Sequence record: MW349128.1
Reading direction: 5' to 3' (one strand)
DNA length: 64,000 bases
Part shown: positions 1,701 to 62,190 of the stretch, in pieces
How the letters are laid out: each line of letters begins with the position of its first letter
Numbering within the stretch: position 1 is the stretch's first letter
The notes under the pieces: generated by a model
The model's input: only the letters and a program-made list of their open reading frames with translations
The model's database searches: none
Told to the model about the DNA's origin: nothing
Made by a program: the position numbers and the translations under genes

Positions 1701-3373
1701 ATGGTTAGATTTTTACTCAAGAAAAAGGATTTAGAAAATGTTCCAGTTGTAACTAATCATGAATCAATTGATAAGAAAGGTGATTTCACTGAAGATGGTA
1801 TCTTCAGTGAGAAAATCTTTGGTCCTGATTCAGAAGCAGATAATATTACTAATGAAGCTATTGTAGATTTAGGTAATAATTATATTTTAAATCCGTTAGG
1901 TTATGAACGTGTTAAAAAATTAATTGGTAATAAAAGATTCCAAGAAATTATTAGTTCTGAAAAACCTATTGATGAAAATGGTAATGTAATTGAACCTGAA
2001 GATGATCATAACTCTTATATTGGTTTAATTGAATTTAGAAAGAATTTCTTAAAAATTCTTAAAGAAGAAGTTAAACGTGAAAAACGTAAAACTAAAGATT
2101 ACAATAGAGTAGTACAATGGTATTTATCTGATTTACTATTCCAAAATTATGTAACTGTATTTAGTCCTAAATTAAGACCTGCTACAGTTAATAAAGCTAC
2201 TAAAACTTTTAGACATTCTGAAATTAATAAAGATTATAATTTATTAATTGCTCATAGTAATAGTATTAAAGAACTTGATAGACATTATACAGATGATTCA
2301 GTAGAGTTACAAAAATTAAATCTATTAAGTAAAATTCAAGATGATAGTATTAATATTAGTGATCGTGTAATTAATGAGAATATTAAAGGTAAAGGTGGAA
2401 CTATTCGTAAATTACTAATGGGTAGTCGTGTTGGTTTTTCTGCACGTTCAGTAATTGTTCCAGCACCTGATCTTAAATTAAATGAAATTAGATTAAATTA
2501 TACTATTTTCTTAGAAGTTTATAAACCTATCTTAGCAAATTTAATGTATGTAACAGAAAATATTCCTTTAGCTAAAGGTGAAGAAATATTAGACAGAGCA
2601 CTAGATACATTTAATCCTAAAGTATATAAATATATGAGAGAACTAGTTGATAAAACTGAAAATGGAATGAGAGTTATTTTAAATAGGAATCCCAGTATTA
2701 GTGAAAGCTCAGTTCAAATATTGAAAATTAAAGATATTATTCAAGATATAGAATCATCAGTAGTAGGTATTAGTAATAATATACTTGCTGGTATGGGTTA
2801 TAAAGGTAGCCTTTCATTATAGTGATATAATGTCAAAAGAATTTTAATTGCTGAGAAGATTATTAAATTAATCAGCATCGATCAAAATGATTGTTCAACG
2901 ACTAAATAAATTCACTCACTAATATGAGTTTGATATAGTCTAATCTTCATAGAAAAATCTCTATGAAGTTAATATACATGGCCGATTAAATAATAGTCGC
3001 TTTAAATTGAGAGATTTATAGAAAAGAATATTAATTGCTGAGAAGATTATTAAATTAATCAGCATCAAGTTAATACAATTTGTTCAACGACTAAATATAT
3101 TCTACCTTAAATGGTAATGATATAGTCTCGTCTATATGATAATATTTATATAGATTAAGATAAACGTATGATGGTGATACTTTAAATATTATAGCACTAT
3201 TTTCAGAAGAACAATACGAACAGTTAAAAGTTCAAGATCCAGTAAATCAATTAATTTCATATAATGATGGATTATTTAATAGAACTTACTCGCTTAATAA
3301 AGACTCACAAATAGCTGTTTATTTACTAAATAACCCTAAATCAAAAAATGTAGGTATTAAAGCTAGTGAATAA
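1701..3373 (+). CDS. rpoC: Non-virion RNA polymerase beta' subunit, N-terminal catalytic part. Spliced: join(1701..2798,2981..2986,3167..3373), 436 aa
   Basis: Motifs EDGIFSEKIFGP, LMGSRVGFSARSVIVP and LNRNPSI are present. Removing two group I introns restores ATG GGT GCC GAT TAT GAT GGT GAT = MGADYDGD (the NADFDGD motif) followed by TLNII...LLNN. Confidence 0.9.
2799..2980 (+). ncRNA. Group I mini-intron R1 (182 nt, no ORF) in RNAP beta'
   Basis: P1 GGU/UAU pairs with GUAGCC, with U-G at the splice site. Core motifs: ttaattgctgagaa (P), aatcagcat (Q), gttcaacgacta (R), gatatagtc (S). P3 gaattt/aaattc. Ends ...tacatG. Confidence 0.9.
2981..2986 (+). other. 6-nt micro-exon GCCGAT (Ala-Asp of the RNAP catalytic ADYDGD motif)
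   Basis: It lies between the terminal G of R1 and the P1 splice site of R2, and it supplies exactly the two missing motif residues in frame. Confidence 0.85.
2987..3166 (+). ncRNA. Group I mini-intron R2 (180 nt, no ORF) in RNAP beta'
   Basis: P1 CGAU/UA pairs with UAGUCG. P, Q, R and S motifs are present. P3 gaatat/atattc. Ends ...taaacG before TAT GAT GGT GAT. Confidence 0.9.
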
Positions 3374-50923: not shown

Positions 50924-52258
50924 TTATTTAAAGTTTCTATAGAAATCATCAAGTCCATTAAGAACAGATTCTTCTAAGAAAACTTTAATAGTTTTATTAC
51001 TTTCTTTAATTGAAGCTAATTGAGATCCTTTATCGTAAATGATATTAGATTCATCAGCTTTATCAAATCCCATATCTTCAGCGATATATTTGATATTGTC
51101 TGAATTTTCTTTAATATAAGTTAAAACTTCTCTAGGAGAAAATTCTGTAACTTTACCGTTAGAAAACATATCAATTGATTCATTAACCATTTGTAAATCA
51201 CTAGTATTGTAATTATTATGATTCTCTGAAATTATATTTTGGATATAAGAATCTTGATGTGATGGAATTACACGTTATCTTAACTATATGATTTTCATAT
51301 AGACGAGACTATATCTTCCTAATTTATATTAGGTAATATATTTAGTCGTTGAACGGAATTTAATCCGATGCTGATTATCTTAATAAAGATTTCCAGCAAT
51401 TAATATTATTTATACTAAGCAATAATTTTTTACCCAGTCATACGTACATCTTAGCTATATGGTTTCCATATAGACGAGACTATATCATACTCTTAGTAAG
51501 AGCGAATATATTTAGTCGTTGAACAACTTGTATTAAGTTGATGCTAATTGGCTTAATTAAACTTCTTAGCAATTAATATTCTTTTTCATTATATATCACT
51601 ATATAAAGCTGCTATAATTTAACAGATTAATCTTAAAGGTTTAGTAACTTCTACTTCACCATTAGGTTTTCTTTCTATTTTACTAAAACCACGCATTGAG
51701 AAAGATACATCAGATTTTTGTCCAATTAAACCTTTCATATCCTTACCAGCTGATGTTTGAGCTGTTTCTACTTCTCCCATTAATTTATTACCATTCCACC
51801 AAGTTCTAGTGATAATATGAGAAATATTACGTTGATCAATATACATTTGACGTTTAGGTTCATCACTTAAAGGATGACCTGCAAATTATTATTCTTTATT
51901 ATTTTAATAAAGATTAGACTATATCATCTAGGTTATATATTTAGTCGTTGAACAACTTGTATTAAGTTGATGCTGATTACTTTAAATAAGATTTCAGCAA
52001 TTAATATAATTTAACGTGAGCCATTTTAACCTAAAACTCACCATAAAAAGTTCTTCTTGCTAATTTTTCTTGTACTACTGGACTATCTAAACCACTTTGG
52101 ATAACATCTTTACGATAAACACGACCATTACGGTTTTGTCTATCAGCTTCTTGTAACTCAGCAATGAATCTAACTGATTTATTATTATCTTGAACTACTT
52201 CTGGTTGAGAAGTTGTATTAGATTCATTAATAATGTAAGCTTTAATATCTTTAGACAT
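50924..52258 (-). CDS. Prohead core protease (T4 gp21-like). Spliced: complement join(52036..52258,51622..51881,51432..51442,50924..51272), 280 aa
   Basis: Motifs LQEADRQNRNGRVY, GESGHP, SFSMRG and CYDWVVIPSH are contiguous only after removing three group I introns. The exon sum of 843 nt is in frame. Confidence 0.88.
51273..51431 (-). ncRNA. Group I mini-intron PC (159 nt, no ORF) in protease
   Basis: P1 ACUGGGU/GCUUAGU; P10 GUAAU/AUUAU. P, Q, R and S motifs present. Ends ...taacG. Confidence 0.88.
51432..51442 (-). other. 11-nt micro-exon TATGACTGGGT (Y-D-W-V)
   Basis: Lies between the terminal G of PB and the P1 site of PC, and restores CYDWVVIPSH. Confidence 0.85.
51443..51621 (-). ncRNA. 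Group I mini-intron PB (179 nt, no ORF) in protease
   Basis: P1 CUGU/UA with UAGCAG. P4 covaries (ttgcta/ttagca). R and S motifs present. Ends ...gtacG. Confidence 0.88.
51882..52035 (-). ncRNA. Group I mini-intron PA (154 nt, no ORF) in protease
   Basis: P1 GUGAGU/GCUCAC with U-G; P10 CA/UG. P, Q, R and S motifs present. Ends ...aatttG. Confidence 0.88.
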
Positions 52259-52345
52259 CTATTTATACTTCCTTTCAAATTTTGATTGTAAATTAAGAAT
52301 ATTTCTATGTTATTCTTCTGAATTTAACAATCTTTTATTAGATTA

Positions 52346-57092: not shown

Positions 57093-60000
57093 ATGAAGAC
57101 TATGGCTATAACAAAATTAAAGAAAAAAATTTATTACGATTATAAAACTAATAACGTAAGCTTTTTAAGAGTTGCTAAAGAACTTAAAGATAATAATATA
57201 CAAAATTATGGTCTACCATTAACTCTATATGATAAGAAATTAATTGGCGTTGATCCTTGGGATGAAGATTTAGATAATGAAATGAAAACTCGTGTTATTA
57301 GGGAAGCTAAACTTAATATATGGTTTTATTTAAGAGAAGTTATCAGAGTTCCAGTTCCAGGTGGTAAGGTAATGTATGAACTTCATAGAGGTAACTTAGC
57401 TATGACGTTTTGTATGCTGCATAATTTAGATACTGCAATAATGTTACCACGTCAGCACTATAAAACATATTCTGCAGTATGTTATTATTCATGGATTATG
57501 TTATTGGTAGGTAATAACTATACAATGTTATTTACACATAAATCATACTCGGACACTACTGAAAACCTTAAAAGATTAAAAAATCTATTCAAAGAGAAGT
57601 GTTTACCTGAATATGTATTAGCTAACTTTGGAGATAAAAATGATAGAGATAAAATTAATGAATTTTCTTTAGCAAGTAATAACAACACAATAAAAACAGT
57701 ATCACCTCCAACAAATGCTGAGAGTAAAATACGTGCTCTCATTAAACTCTATTAACTGCTGAAAAAGATACTAAACCAATCAGCATCAATCAAATTGATT
57801 GTTCAACGACTAAATATAGAGATAATTAATATTATAAGATATAGTCTAGTGTGTATGAATATCATACAATGTATTACGGCAAACAAAGCAGGAAGAGGTA
57901 GCACCGTATGTAGATGCAGTGCATAAAGATTTTTAATTGCTGGAAGACTAATAATGAAGTTAATCAGCATCACTTTAATTAGTGTTCAACGACTAAATAA
58001 AATCAATTTTAATAATTTTTACTGTTAACATTCCTTTATCAGTACGATAACGGAGGGATAAAATGCCTAAAGGTGTTAAAAGTAAAGAAAAATTCATAGA
58101 ACAAAAAAATAAAACTTTTAAAGAAATAAAAGATATCAATGGAGATAAATTTGAAATACTGGGAGAGTATAAAAATTCTAAAGAACCAATTAAATGTCAT
58201 TGTAATATATGTGATAGAGATTTTTTCTTACCTACTGAAAAACTAAGATTAAAAAGAAAATTCTGTAATAGAAAAGATTGTAGATATTCAGAAAAACCCA
58301 AGAATTCTAAAGGTAAAGAAACTTTTTTAATAGAATTAAAAGATAAGTTCGGATTTAATTATACTTATATTGAAGGATTCAATGGAATGAATAAAAAGTG
58401 TAGATTCCGTTGTGGAAAATGTGGAAATATAAGATATTTTGCAAAGCCTTCTACTCTAATGGATAAAAGAAAGAAGTATAATTCAGTAAACTGTAACAGA
58501 TGTATAAATAATGAAAATTATATCATATTAGATAGTCAAGAATTATCTAAAAAGACAACAGAAGAGTTTCAAGGTGAATTAGATATGATATTTGGATATA
58601 ATAAATTTAATGTGTTAACTGAATATACTAGGAGCAAAGATTATATCTATTTGAAGAGTAATGACTGTGGACACAAATTTAAAACGAGACCAGATGATAT
58701 ACTTAAAAGAAAAAGATGTAGTGTATGTTCTAAAAGTATAGGAGAAATTGCCATCATTGAATTACTTCAAGAGAATAATGTAGAATATGAGAATGAAGTT
58801 ACTTTTGAAGGATCTAGTTTTAGATTTGATTTTTATTTTAAAAAAATAAATACTGTAGTTGAAGTAGATGGAAAAGGTCATATAAAAGGTTATGGAAATT
58901 TCATTAATGATAAAAGAAACAAAAGCAAAAGAACACCTGAAGATATAAAAAAATTAGATAATGAAAAAGATGAATTTATAAGAAGCAAAGGAATAAATAT
59001 GATACGTCTCCCTTACCAGAATAGAATAAATGAAGAATTAATTATCCCTATGAAAAAATTATTAAAATTATGATATAGTCTGATCTGCATGGATTATCAT
59101 GTAGTTTAACGTAAATGACCTATGGTTTGGCTTGATGAGTGGGCGTTTATACCGCATAATCAAGTAATGTTTGAAGCGATGAGTAAAAAGGCTCCATCTT
59201 TATAGAAATATAGATGATGAATAATATTAACTGCTGAAAAGTTTAAAAACCAATCAGCATCATTAAATAATGTTCAACGACTAAATTTATTAAATCTTAA
59301 AAAGATTATGATATAGTCTGATCTGCATGGATTATCATGCAGCTAACATAAATGACCAGCAATAAGTACAGCTTCAAGAATTGCAAAAGAAAATGGTTCT
59401 CCTTATGGACTTCTTATCACAACTACACCTAAAATGACTGGGTGAAGATAAATTAAAATTTATCTTAAGGACTTTATTAATTGCTGAAAGGTCCTTAGAG
59501 CTTAATGAGCTACAACGTGACTGGCAACAGTGAGCGTGATATGCTTAAAAATCATTAAGATTGGAAAATCAGCAGCTAATTTTCAATTTAATAAATTATT
59601 AAATCAATAATGAACAACTCTTTATACAAAAGATGTAGGAGTTGGTAATTTTGGATTTTTATGAAAAATTAAATAAAAAATTTGATAACAGTATAATAAC
59701 AAAAGAAAAATATATAAACGGCAATGAAAAGATTAAATTCTATTGTAAAAATTGTAAAAATTATTTTTATTCTAAACCTAGAAAAATTATTGAATCATCT
59801 TATAAATCATGTCATTTATGTAGGAAAAGGGAAAAAGAAAATATATTTAGGAATAATCTCATTAATATGATAAATAAAGAAATATATGAAATTATTGAAA
59901 TGAAAGATCCTATAAAAAATAATGAAAAATTTTCTTTAAAACATAAAGAATGTGGAAATATCTTTTCTATATCAGTGAGTAATTTTAAAAAAGGAAGAAA

Positions 60001-62190
60001 ATGCCCATATTGCTCAAATAAGCCTATGAAAAGGGATCAAAATTTCTTTTTAGAAAAAATAAATAATATTGATTCAAGTTTCTTAAAAGAATATGAATTA
60101 AAAAGCAATTATATAAGCGTTAACGAAAATATTAAAATTAAACATAAAGAATGTGGAAATATCTTTAATACTACCCCTAATAGAATTTATAGAGGTAATA
60201 GATGTAGTATGTGTTCACATAAATCTGATAAATATAATTTTAAAGAGGTAAAGAGTATAATAGAAAAAGATGGAAAATTTAAACTTTTATCTAATAATTA
60301 TATAAATAATAAATATAAATTAAAAATAAAATGTCTTAACTGTGGTAATATACAAGAGAAAAGTTTAGTTACATTTCAAGATAAAAGAAATAGAAAATGT
60401 ATATGTGAAAAATATTCTTTACCAATTCGTTATATAACAAATTTTTTAATAGATAAAAATATAAATTTTGAGCTAGAAAAAAGATTTGATAATTGTAGAA
60501 ATATTAGACCTTTACCCTTCGATATTTTTATAAATGATTTTAATATTCTAATTGAATATGATGGGGAACAACATTTTAAACCAATATATGGTATAGAAAA
60601 ACTCAATAAAACTAAAATAAATGATGAAATAAAAAATAATTTTTGTAATAAAGAAGGAATAGAATTAATTAGAATAAACTGTTATGATAATTATGAAGAT
60701 AAAATTGAAAATTTAGTTCAACGACTATCGAAAGTTGAGTATACATCGTGAGGATATATACAATATAAATGAGTAGAGTACAGCCAAGCGGTTAGTTTTT
60801 AAGTGATATTAGCTTAATATAATTCTATTAAATGGAAACATAAAGACGTGTATATTAACACATATACGTAAGATATAGTCTCAACGTTTAGGGAAAACCT
60901 AAAGAAGTTCATAAGAGAACTGGTATAGATTAGCGATCTATATTGAAGATTTTGAGTACTCTCGACACATCTCAAGGGCAATTTTTCTTTCAACAAATGA
61001 ATGAAGCAGCTCAATGGAATGAAAAAATATATGATTATTTTATTGATAGTGAAGAAGAAGGAAATTCTAAATTAGAAAAATACATGGAAGATAATTCAAA
61101 TAATGAATTCATGTATATAGAATATTCATATAAAGAATTAGGTAAAGATGAAAATTGGTTAGAAAAACAAAAGAGACAAATTGGTTCTTTAGAAGCTGTT
61201 AAACGTGAGATATTATTGGAATGGGCTTATAGTTCTGATGATTCATTATTCTCTGAAGAACAAATGACTGAAATATCTATGTATGCTAATAAAGAAATAT
61301 ATAATACTCTTGAATTTAATATTGATGGTAGAACTTATTATGTAAATATGATTAAATATATGGATAATATTACAGAGAAAAATTGGCTTATTGGTATTGA
61401 TATGTCTGGTGGTTTAGGACGAGATAATACAGCGTTTACTGTAGTGGATCCAGCTACTTTGGAACCAGTAATGACTTTTAAAAATAATGTAATTAATGGA
61501 CCTACATTCAGAAAATTAATTAAAGAATTGGTTAGTTTCTATATACCTAACGCTATATTAATACCTGAACGTAACTATGCAGGTTTAACAGTAATTGATC
61601 ATATGATATCTTATGATGGTTTAGAATCTAATTTATTCTATACGCTTAAAACTCGTGTAGCTGAAAAGCAAGTAGAAAATAAAAGTTTATTTAATGAAAT
61701 GTCTAGATATAGCAAAACTGAAAAAGTTAAAAAAGAAACTCGTAGATATGGTATTGATACAACTAAAAAATCTCGTGATATAATGTTAAATGAAATATTA
61801 TCTATGCTTGTTGAAGAAAAACCACATTTAATTAATAATAAACCACTTTTCCAAGAAATCAAATCTTTACAAATGATTAAAGGACGTATTGACCATCCAC
61901 CGGGAGGTCACGATGACTTAATGATGTCTTATTTATTCTGTTTATATGCGTATTACTATGAAAAAGATATTAATAAATTTGTAAAAATTAAATATGGTTC
62001 TAAACTCTCACCTAACAGTGAAAATGCAGAAGGAATGAAAAAAGAACAAGAAGCTAGAAGAAAAGATATTGCTTCAATTAAACGTATCAATAGTGTTATT
62101 GAAGGAAATGATATGAGTAATTCTATATTTGGTCAACAACAAAAACCAATGGATAACAATAATAAACGTATTATGGATTTATTCAAATAA
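57093..62190 (+). CDS. terL: Terminase large subunit. Spliced: join(57093..57725,57879..57907,59118..59184,59356..59430,60955..62190), 679 aa
   Basis: Walker A-like LPRQHYKT, then AGRGSTVP, Walker B VWLDEWAF, motif C LITTTP and nuclease IGIDMSGGLGRD and HDDLMM. The central motifs become contiguous only after removing four introns. Confidence 0.88.
57726..57878 (+). ncRNA. Group I mini-intron T1 (153 nt, no ORF) in terminase
   Basis: P1 UGAGAGU/GCUCUCA; P3 ctctat/atagag. P, Q, R and S motifs present. Ends ...ttacG. Confidence 0.9.
57879..57907 (+). other. 29-nt micro-exon (ANKAGRGSTV)
   Basis: In frame between T1 and T2. Confidence 0.85.
57908..59117 (+). mobile_element. Group I intron T2 (1210 nt), mini-intron-type core with a homing endonuclease ORF in the P8 loop
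   Basis: P1 GCACCGU/GCAGUGC. R motif lies before the ORF and S motif overlaps its stop codon. Ends ...aaatG. Confidence 0.88.
58063..59073 (+). CDS. Intron-encoded putative homing endonuclease (Cys-rich repeats plus Vsr/DUF559-like nuclease domain)
   Basis: Multiple CxxC motifs; C-terminal FRFDFYF...VVEVDGKGH...IRLPY. Confidence 0.8.
   Translation: MPKGVKSKEKFIEQKNKTFKEIKDINGDKFEILGEYKNSKEPIKCHCNICDRDFFLPTEKLRLKRKFCNRKDCRYSEKPKNSKGKETFLIELKDKFGFNYTYIEGFNGMNKKCRFRCGKCGNIRYFAKPSTLMDKRKKYNSVNCNRCINNENYIILDSQELSKKTTEEFQGELDMIFGYNKFNVLTEYTRSKDYIYLKSNDCGHKFKTRPDDILKRKRCSVCSKSIGEIAIIELLQENNVEYENEVTFEGSSFRFDFYFKKINTVVEVDGKGHIKGYGNFINDKRNKSKRTPEDIKKLDNEKDEFIRSKGINMIRLPYQNRINEELIIPMKKLLKL
59185..59355 (+). 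ncRNA. Group I mini-intron T3 (171 nt, no ORF) in terminase; 3' boundary anomalous
   Basis: P1 GAUG-AGU/GCU-C-CAUC. P, Q, R and S motifs present. Frame requires the exon to resume at CCA 59356, which makes A59355 the terminal base. Confidence 0.8.
59431..60954 (+). mobile_element. Group I intron T4 (1524 nt), full-size phage IA2-like, with a homing endonuclease ORF in the P6 region
   Basis: P1 CACCU/GGGUG; P10 AGU/ACU. Extended P5, aatcagcagc, gttcaacgactatcg, gtacagccaagcgg (P7.1/7.2 region), aagatatagtc and several P9 helices. Ends ...ttttG. Confidence 0.88.
59642..60751 (+). CDS. Intron-encoded putative homing endonuclease (Cys-rich repeats plus Vsr/DUF559-like nuclease domain)
   Basis: Repeated KHKECGNIF...CxxC; C-terminal LPFDIFI...LIEYDGEQHF. 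The 3' end overlaps the intron R motif. Confidence 0.82.
   Translation: MVILDFYEKLNKKFDNSIITKEKYINGNEKIKFYCKNCKNYFYSKPRKIIESSYKSCHLCRKREKENIFRNNLINMINKEIYEIIEMKDPIKNNEKFSLKHKECGNIFSISVSNFKKGRKCPYCSNKPMKRDQNFFLEKINNIDSSFLKEYELKSNYISVNENIKIKHKECGNIFNTTPNRIYRGNRCSMCSHKSDKYNFKEVKSIIEKDGKFKLLSNNYINNKYKLKIKCLNCGNIQEKSLVTFQDKRNRKCICEKYSLPIRYITNFLIDKNINFELEKRFDNCRNIRPLPFDIFINDFNILIEYDGEQHFKPIYGIEKLNKTKINDEIKNNFCNKEGIELIRINCYDNYEDKIENLVQRLSKVEYTS

Follow-up and report, generated by a model that had tools for sequence, protein, structure and literature searches.

The stretch of DNA analysed here, called the window and 64,000 nucleotides (nt) long, corresponded to nt 1-64000 of Staphylococcus phage Machias (MW349128.1), with 100% identity and identical coordinates in a BLAST search against phage records. 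Machias is an AR9-like jumbo phage with a genome of 274 kb. The gene under study, CPT_Machias_065, occupies 52258..50924 on the minus strand, follows a ribosome-binding site annotated in GenBank at 52270-52273, and lies about 2 kb from the gene for the major head subunit precursor. GenBank describes it as a 'prohead core scaffold and protease' encoded by a three-piece join, with 'exon boundaries predicted based on alignment to YP_009283018'. A report on the phages MarsHill, Madawaska and Machias (bioRxiv 10.1101/2020.12.14.422802) lists the genes for RNA polymerase subunits, protease, DNA polymerase, terminase and gyrase B as disrupted by introns, the exons having been predicted via protein alignment. 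The intron-split state of the Machias protease gene is already published and annotated, and what is new here for this gene is only an 11-nt exon and the exact junction at the first insertion site. The report covers split genes of AR9 together with the same phages and the same genes as here; exons of 6-18 nt are not mentioned in the accessible part of it, whereas such micro-exons were recognised in this study. Literature searches found no paper describing micro-exons of the Machias intron family.

The list of open reading frames (ORFs) in the window gave three minus-strand fragments at this locus, with 75, 75 and 88 amino acids (aa) at 52258-52031, 51846-51619 and 51190-50924, respectively. The alignment with the uninterrupted 843-nt homologue of phage PALS_2 (L002:1634-2476), which served as the reference, identified exactly three insertions, all in Machias, and the 11-mer TATGACTGGGT between the second and third insertions was placed opposite TATGATTGGGT of PALS_2. 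The 1335-nt precursor (52258..50924) is thereby divided, all on the minus strand, as follows. Exon 1 (52036..52258, 223 nt, aligned to PALS_2 nt 1-223) encodes Met1 to Glu74 along with the first base of the Ser75 codon, and ends with U. Intron A (51882..52035, 154 nt) separates it from exon 2 (51622..51881, 260 nt), which completes Ser75 and encodes Gly76 to Cys161. Intron B (51443..51621, 179 nt) is followed by the micro-exon (51432..51442, 11 nt, UAUGACUGGGU) encoding Tyr162, Asp163 (GAC at 51439-51437), Trp164 and two bases of the Val165 codon, and intron C (51273..51431, 159 nt) by exon 4 (50924..51272, 349 nt including the stop codon, aligned to PALS_2 nt 495-843), which encodes the last base of Val165 and Val166 to Lys280. 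The exons were 91-96% identical to PALS_2, while the inserts had no counterpart there, and the sum of 223, 260, 11 and 349 nt was 843 nt, equal to the length of the PALS_2 gene. This four-exon arrangement is far beyond chance. An initial annotation made from the letters of the window had proposed a protease gene split by three mini-introns around an 11-nt exon, with an in-frame exon sum of 843 nt and a join that the ORF track had missed, and the comparison with PALS_2 agreed with it on each of these points.

The junctions could be compared with relatives in which the insertion sites are empty. The PALS_2 protein reads TFYGESGHP and LICYDWVVIPSH across the sites of the three Machias insertions, and the joins proposed in the initial annotation, TFYGE-S-GHP and LIC-YDWV-VIPSH, were the same as the protein sequences of the intronless PALS_2, UFV_DC4 and SA1. 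MarsHill, in which site A is empty, reads GAGTCAGGTCAT; because this matches the predicted join of exon 1 and exon 2, GAGT|CAGGTCAT, the residue at junction A was assigned as Ser75 (TCA) rather than Ala. The junctions at the RNA level are predicted to be GAGU|CAGG (A), CUGU|UAUG (B) and GGGU|UGUA (C). GenBank places junction A one base off when compared with the empty site of MarsHill, and the deposited Machias protease QQO92457.1 (P0029), of 277 aa, reads GEAGHP and LICR---VIPSH. The relatives, either intact or correctly joined, have 280 aa with YDWV. The deposited protein lacks Tyr-Asp-Trp because GenBank merges intron B, the micro-exon and intron C into a single intron, and the public record of this protease, without the tripeptide holding the catalytic Asp, can now be corrected.

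The three inserts shared 66-70% identity with one another, had 22-27% G+C, and contained 3-8 stop codons in each frame, so that no ORF, and hence no homing-endonuclease ORF, was found within their 154-179 nt. A permissive Rfam scan, run on this region only, detected three full-length matches to the group I intron model RF00028 (model positions 1-253), with E-values of 5e-10 for intron B, 8e-9 for intron C and 4e-6 for intron A. The conserved elements GUUCAAcGACUAAAU and GAUAUAGUC were matched exactly in the RF00028 alignments of the protease introns, and all three matched the consensus GUUCAaAGACUAAA and AAGAUAUAGUC of the guanosine-binding P7 and J8/7. The core motif GTTCAACGACTAAAT was found eight times as an exact copy in the window, where 0.21 copies were expected. 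The P7 to J8/7 motif was also tried as a marker of the Machias family and rejected, as at least 119 viral contigs, including giant-virus bins, matched it, indicating that it is generic to many group I introns.

The fold was examined by covariation among 14 members, namely the three protease introns, their orthologues in LY01, Madawaska and PB50, and four other copies of the Machias window. The pairs of P3, P4, P6, P7, P8 and P9 were counted, with P3/P7 written as a pseudoknot; P3 and P7 were set by hand, as RNAalifold, unable to predict a pseudoknot, mispaired part of P3'. Over the 36 pairs, 97.9% of the cells were paired, compared with 26-42% when the partners were slid, and compensatory changes were observed in 19 of the 36; none of 500 shuffles reached any of these measures. 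P7 was invariant across the 14 members and hence uninformative for covariation. As MAFFT left the 5' ends of the family (P1/P2) unaligned, P1 and P10 were analysed sequence by sequence. The splice-site rules, a U before the 5' site paired to G and a G as the last intron base, held in 15 of 15 introns. P1 was 4-7 base pairs (bp) long in these 15 introns, with 6 bp in intron A (GUGAGU/GCUCAC, guide 52021-52016), 4 bp in intron B (CUGU/GCAG, 51612-51609) and 7 bp in intron C (ACUGGGU/GCUUAGU, guide 51420-51414). Exact removal of the introns restores a conserved uninterrupted ORF, and intronless alleles occur in relatives. The inserts are compact group I introns without an ORF, and their sequences predict self-splicing. 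They share the core helices, the P3/P7 pseudoknot, the J6/7-P7 and J8/7-P7 segments, the U.G pair, the terminal G and P10 with RF00028 introns of the Tetrahymena, Azoarcus and Twort type, but differ from that type in being only 154-179 nt long, lacking peripheral domains, having an optional P2 and, in intron A, almost no P8, and in scoring below the Rfam threshold.

These features bear directly on the GenBank model, in which 349 nt (~51621-51273) are removed as one intron and ...UGU is joined to CGUGUAAUU to give the 277-aa LICR-VIPSH protein. Although this two-intron model is the deposited annotation and keeps the reading frame, the 349 nt contain not one but two complete group I cores, with a separate P1, P3-P9 and terminal G for each, and the intron so defined has to end with A instead of G. 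The model also deletes the invariant Tyr-Asp-Trp with its aligned catalytic Asp. Relatives possess only one of these two introns, and their YDW codons are either intact or split differently. We regard it as hardly credible.

Several points weigh against the reading of the locus as three self-splicing introns around an 11-nt exon. Junction C carries a one-base ambiguity, as an 11-nt exon, following the group I rule, gives GTT for Val165, and a 12-nt exon (UAUGACUGGGUA, with the intron ending ...ACGU) gives GTA, as in uninterrupted alleles. LY01, Madawaska, PB50 and PALS_2 have exactly the join of the 12-nt exon, TGGGTA+GTAATT, in their uninterrupted alleles; nevertheless, this shift breaks both rules kept by all 15 family introns, the U.G pair at the 5' site and the terminal G, and appears improbable. 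The protein is unchanged whichever junction holds. The Rfam scores of introns B, C and A (45.5, 41.6 and 32.6 bits) were all below the gathering score of 50 bits, and a scan of the whole window at default thresholds detected nothing; these scores are low because peripheral segments and P8 or P2 are missing, and the E-values of 5e-10 to 4e-6 are significant in spite of them. The P1 helices were short and AU-rich, and the comparison of cognate (4.9 bp) with non-cognate pairing (3.4 bp) was weak and was not relied on. Intron A had no P2 and practically no P8 (~2 bp) in Machias, AH12, LY01 and Madawaska. Splicing itself, its junctions and autocatalysis are what we infer from the sequences. As a side observation, the group I introns in the window (at least eight cores) all scored below the Rfam gathering threshold, and standard RNA annotation therefore misses the whole family.

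The small size of the introns also raises the possibility that at least one of them, above all the 154-nt intron A without P8, is not autonomous and needs a phage or host protein or another intron RNA. The lengths of 154-179 nt stand against an Rfam consensus of 253 positions, which the introns match over its full length only if peripheral parts are skipped, and the orthologue of intron A in PB50 keeps a normal 7-bp P8 that the Machias copy, also without P2, does not have; the approximately 31 related cores in one genome could use a common cofactor. No maturase-like ORF was found in or beside the three protease introns. We consider such dependence rather unlikely, though deserving attention; nothing observed speaks directly against it, and it is compatible with group I splicing of the gene as proposed here. 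Cores of ~154-180 nt are very compact, and they may offer minimal ribozyme scaffolds if self-splicing is true; no usable literature figure was found for the smallest known group I intron.

The identity of the encoded protein was investigated by searching the Machias gene pieces separately and by using the intact PALS_2 orthologue (93% identical) as a full-length query. The PALS_2 protein matched Pfam Peptidase_S77 (PF03420) with 36.9 bits against a cut-off of 27, and exon 2 was the only Machias piece to match it, weakly and below this cut-off at 18.9 bits. A single sequence matched T4 gp21 weakly (E=0.018), while a profile of ten homologues matched the gp21 structure 5JBL with E=1.3e-10. The triad of gp21 is His-Ser-Asp (PMC5694885). 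In the profile alignment, His77 (51876-51874) in GHP was placed opposite gp21 GELNAP, with Ala at the His position in the crystal, Ser136 (51699-51697) in FSMRG opposite VASRG, with Ala at the Ser position in the crystal, and Asp163 in cYDwv opposite an Asp in gvDav. All three residues were invariant in the ten homologues, with identities down to 31%, as was the Ser169-His170 pair (PSH) in exon 4. The alignment supports Asp163 in the 11-nt exon as the putative catalytic Asp, and the gene is that of a T4 gp21-type prohead serine protease, which is predicted to process head proteins. The gp21 family, the alignment to its triad and the location of the likely catalytic Asp in the micro-exon had all been anticipated in the initial annotation; its further claim that both the His and the Asp positions are interrupted stood for Asp, whose codon is bracketed by introns B and C, and needs a qualification for His, as the His77 codon itself is not split and intron A is found two codons ahead of it. 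The Machias protease shares with T4 gp21 the homologous catalytic domain, the aligned His, Ser and Asp, and a gene near the head genes, and differs in approximately 100 additional C-terminal aa, named 'scaffold' in deposited records, and in its introns. T4 gp21 is itself related to phiKZ gp175 (S80) and to the herpesvirus assemblin fold, MEROPS S77-S80.

The state of the exons is also relevant to whether insertions of a repeated element have turned the locus into a pseudogene, with the protease function supplied otherwise. The inserts indeed belong to a repeat family with ~28-31 copies in the Machias genome, but the exons retain 91-96% identity to intact homologues, most of the changes are synonymous, the frame and the triad are intact, and five phages isolated independently of one another share the same inserts. 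The BLAST places did not include a second copy of the protease either, and the pseudogene explanation is extremely unlikely.

The micro-exon is flanked so closely that the two neighbouring introns appear to share it. The P10 guide of intron B (UUAUA, 51617-51613), located just 5' of the P1 guide, is predicted to pair with the first five nucleotides of the micro-exon, UAUGA, and intron B contains a P2 hairpin and the terminal G. The P1 of intron C would take the last seven nucleotides of the micro-exon, and its P10 would pair over 6 bp with exon 4. All 11 nt would accordingly be claimed by the guide pairings of introns B and C, and since the micro-exon would be wholly engaged by P10 of B and P1 of C, each intron would have to recognise it. 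In LY01, the downstream intron occupies site 489, 5 nt upstream of its position in Machias, so that the exon shrinks to 6 nt (TACGAT, Tyr-Asp), and the P10 pairing covaries in a compensatory manner, with exon UACGA and guide UUGUA in LY01 and UAUGA and UUAUA in Machias. Skipping of the micro-exon in Machias would lead to a frameshift and a stop after 179 aa. The arrangement offers a natural test system of two ribozymes sharing one tiny exon, through P10 of one and P1 of the next.

Taken with the anatomy, the covarying fold, the splice-site rules, the empty sites and the triad alignment observed above, the locus very probably produces one precursor with three independent compact group I introns, the removal of which would yield the 843-nt ORF for a 280-aa gp21-type protease. 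The gene would be transcribed as a single 1335-nt RNA, in which each intron, judging from the family, would fold into P3-P4-P5-P6 and P7-P8-P9 with the P3/P7 pseudoknot. The 5' site would be chosen via a P1 of 4-7 bp formed with the internal guide, a G of which pairs with the U at the end of the exon, and free guanosine would start two transesterifications that release the intron after its terminal G. Three such events would join the four exons into a protease with His77, Ser136 and Asp163, the 11-nt third exon supplying Tyr-Asp-Trp. The gene is presumably expressed because the intron-carrying phages were isolated as viable. The positions of the introns, in or beside the codons of the catalytic site, may reflect the fact that the DNA is most conserved there, and such stretches are the usual homing targets of group I elements.

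The Machias arrangement was repeated in AH12, with variants in LY01, Madawaska and PB50. Five insertion sites were found in the protease gene across the clade, each filled in some phages and empty in others, and all five were empty in PALS_2, UFV_DC4 and SA1. Site 219 of the coding sequence is occupied in MarsHill (L003 1634-3644) by a 1168-nt intron with a LAGLIDADG gene. Site 223 (A) holds introns of 154-164 nt in Machias, AH12, LY01, Madawaska and PB50, and is empty in PALS_2 and MarsHill; site 483 (B) holds introns of 179-181 nt in Machias, AH12 and LY01, and is empty in Madawaska, PB50, MarsHill and PALS_2. Introns of 180-184 nt were found at site 489 in LY01, Madawaska and PB50, and introns of 159 nt at site 494 (C) in Machias and AH12, the latter site being empty in LY01, Madawaska, PB50, MarsHill and PALS_2. 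The protease of phage S6 is deposited as fragments of 79 and 208 aa, and appears to contain a large intron near site 219 like that of MarsHill. Site 219 lies only 4 nt upstream of site A, and no examined phage has introns at both; an intron at either site would disrupt the target of the other.

The copy number of the family was estimated by a hidden Markov model of the 5' core, applied to the first 264 kb of Machias, and by BLAST with intron B alone, counted as places per genome. The former detected 31 copies. The latter detected 31 places in LY01, 28 in Machias, 22 in AH12, 16 in PB50, 10 in Madawaska and 8 in MarsHill, and none in PALS_2, S6, UFV_DC4 or SA1, and these intron-rich and intron-free sister phages provide a good setting to study intron spread. 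A retron-type reverse transcriptase was considered as a factor tracking the intron load, and was rejected as all ten Staphylococcus jumbo phages possess it, those without introns among them, so that there was no correlation.

A broader reading, which we put forward only tentatively and consider doubtful, is that one minimal endonuclease-free family (~150-185 nt) has grown to ~31 copies in the Machias lineage by guide-directed ectopic insertion, with paired introns acting as a control or a block. Under it, the family may have landed repeatedly in pairs 6-29 nt apart on catalytic motifs, namely the protease Asp, the AD of the ADYDGD metal site and, as a candidate, possibly a terminase ATPase motif. 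Guide-directed insertion is suggested because unrelated genes share the bases before the splice site together with the guide, as CGAU/GUCG is found in the protease of Madawaska, LY01 and PB50 and in the RNA polymerase beta' gene of Machias; the spread would go by reverse splicing or an equivalent process. With a micro-exon fully occupied by two guide pairings, splicing would have to be ordered or cooperative. If this is true, skipping would give a truncated or catalytically dead enzyme, and tandem introns could control the amount of active protease or polymerase, or could alternatively block an endonuclease-carrying intron aimed at the neighbouring site 219.

The closest known precedents are orf142 of phage Twort, with a 23-nt exon and exon skipping, and the Coxiella 23S rRNA, with a 34-nt exon (PMC10136302). 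Twort, a Staphylococcus myophage, has three ORF-less group I introns in one protein gene, two similar ones flanking a very short exon, as in Machias. The Machias case is of the same kind as Twort and Coxiella and goes further than both, with smaller exons, smaller introns and a higher copy number. Compared with the 23 nt of Twort, the exon is 11 nt in the Machias protease and 6 nt in both the LY01 protease and the Machias RNA polymerase beta' gene and, unlike in Twort, the Machias micro-exon is wholly taken by P10 and P1. Splicing and exon skipping were shown experimentally for Twort, whereas splicing in Machias is predicted from sequence. Tandem group I introns spaced by only 6-11 nt in essential phage genes are shorter in spacing than either precedent.

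Elsewhere in Machias, RNA polymerase and terminase genes contain further short exons, of 6, 16, 18 and 29 nt, each lying between a tandem pair of introns. The 6-nt exon GCCGAT (window 2981-2986, plus strand) encodes the 'AD' of ADYDGD in the non-virion RNA polymerase beta' gene, and the predicted splice (window 2799-3166, plus strand) reads AGMG-AD-YDGDT, equal to intact PALS_2 (AGMGADYDGDT). The deposited Machias beta' protein lacks this catalytic metal-binding motif and all of the sequence after it. Two loci outside the window, at ~164.63-164.99 kb and 243.44-243.81 kb of MW349128.1 (L132 and L133), also fitted intact relatives, namely PALS_2 and UFV_DC4, the protein of which reads VGYLHVKRLQQLLSKK; for each of these genes GenBank gives one intron fewer than there are cores. 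Several Machias RNA polymerase subunit entries are apparently truncated or lack short exons, because exons of 6-18 nt are undetectable via ORF calling or protein alignment.

The large terminase gene (window 57726-61000, plus strand) is split by at least four introns. A mini-intron at 57726-57878 (153 nt) precedes a 29-nt exon at 57879-57907, in which ANKAGRGST is a candidate for the ATPase motif, followed by an intron encoding a homing endonuclease (58063-59073), a second mini-intron (59185-59354, 170 nt) and an intron holding an ORF at 59651-60751. GenBank gives two separate 'terminase large subunit' fragments, and the gene was not reconstructable according to the phage paper (bioRxiv 10.1101/2020.12.14.422802). 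The terminase exon before an apparent intron at ~59448 ends with ATGACTGGGT (59438-59447), identical to the last 10 nt of the protease micro-exon (51441-51432); the terminase splice site is putative, and the shared bases may reflect chance or a common insertion target.

Three annotated 'transposases' of Machias were found to be of the TnpB type (OrfB_IS605 with a Cas12f1-like TNB domain), located outside the window at 78.0-79.4 kb (L130), 205.6-207.0 kb (L132) and 227.9-229.4 kb (L133) of MW349128.1. A group I core belonging to the same family precedes each of these genes by ~130-210 nt, and one of the genes lies inside the annotated intron of a virion protein gene. By analogy, this layout is IStron-like, IStrons being known from Clostridium botulinum phages (PMC4227781). 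Two core motifs 300-450 nt apart were also observed in the uncultivated viral contigs L020, L021, L058, L073, L074, L080 and L090 of IMG/VR (110-400 kb), and jumbo phages may often carry tandem introns at such close spacing.

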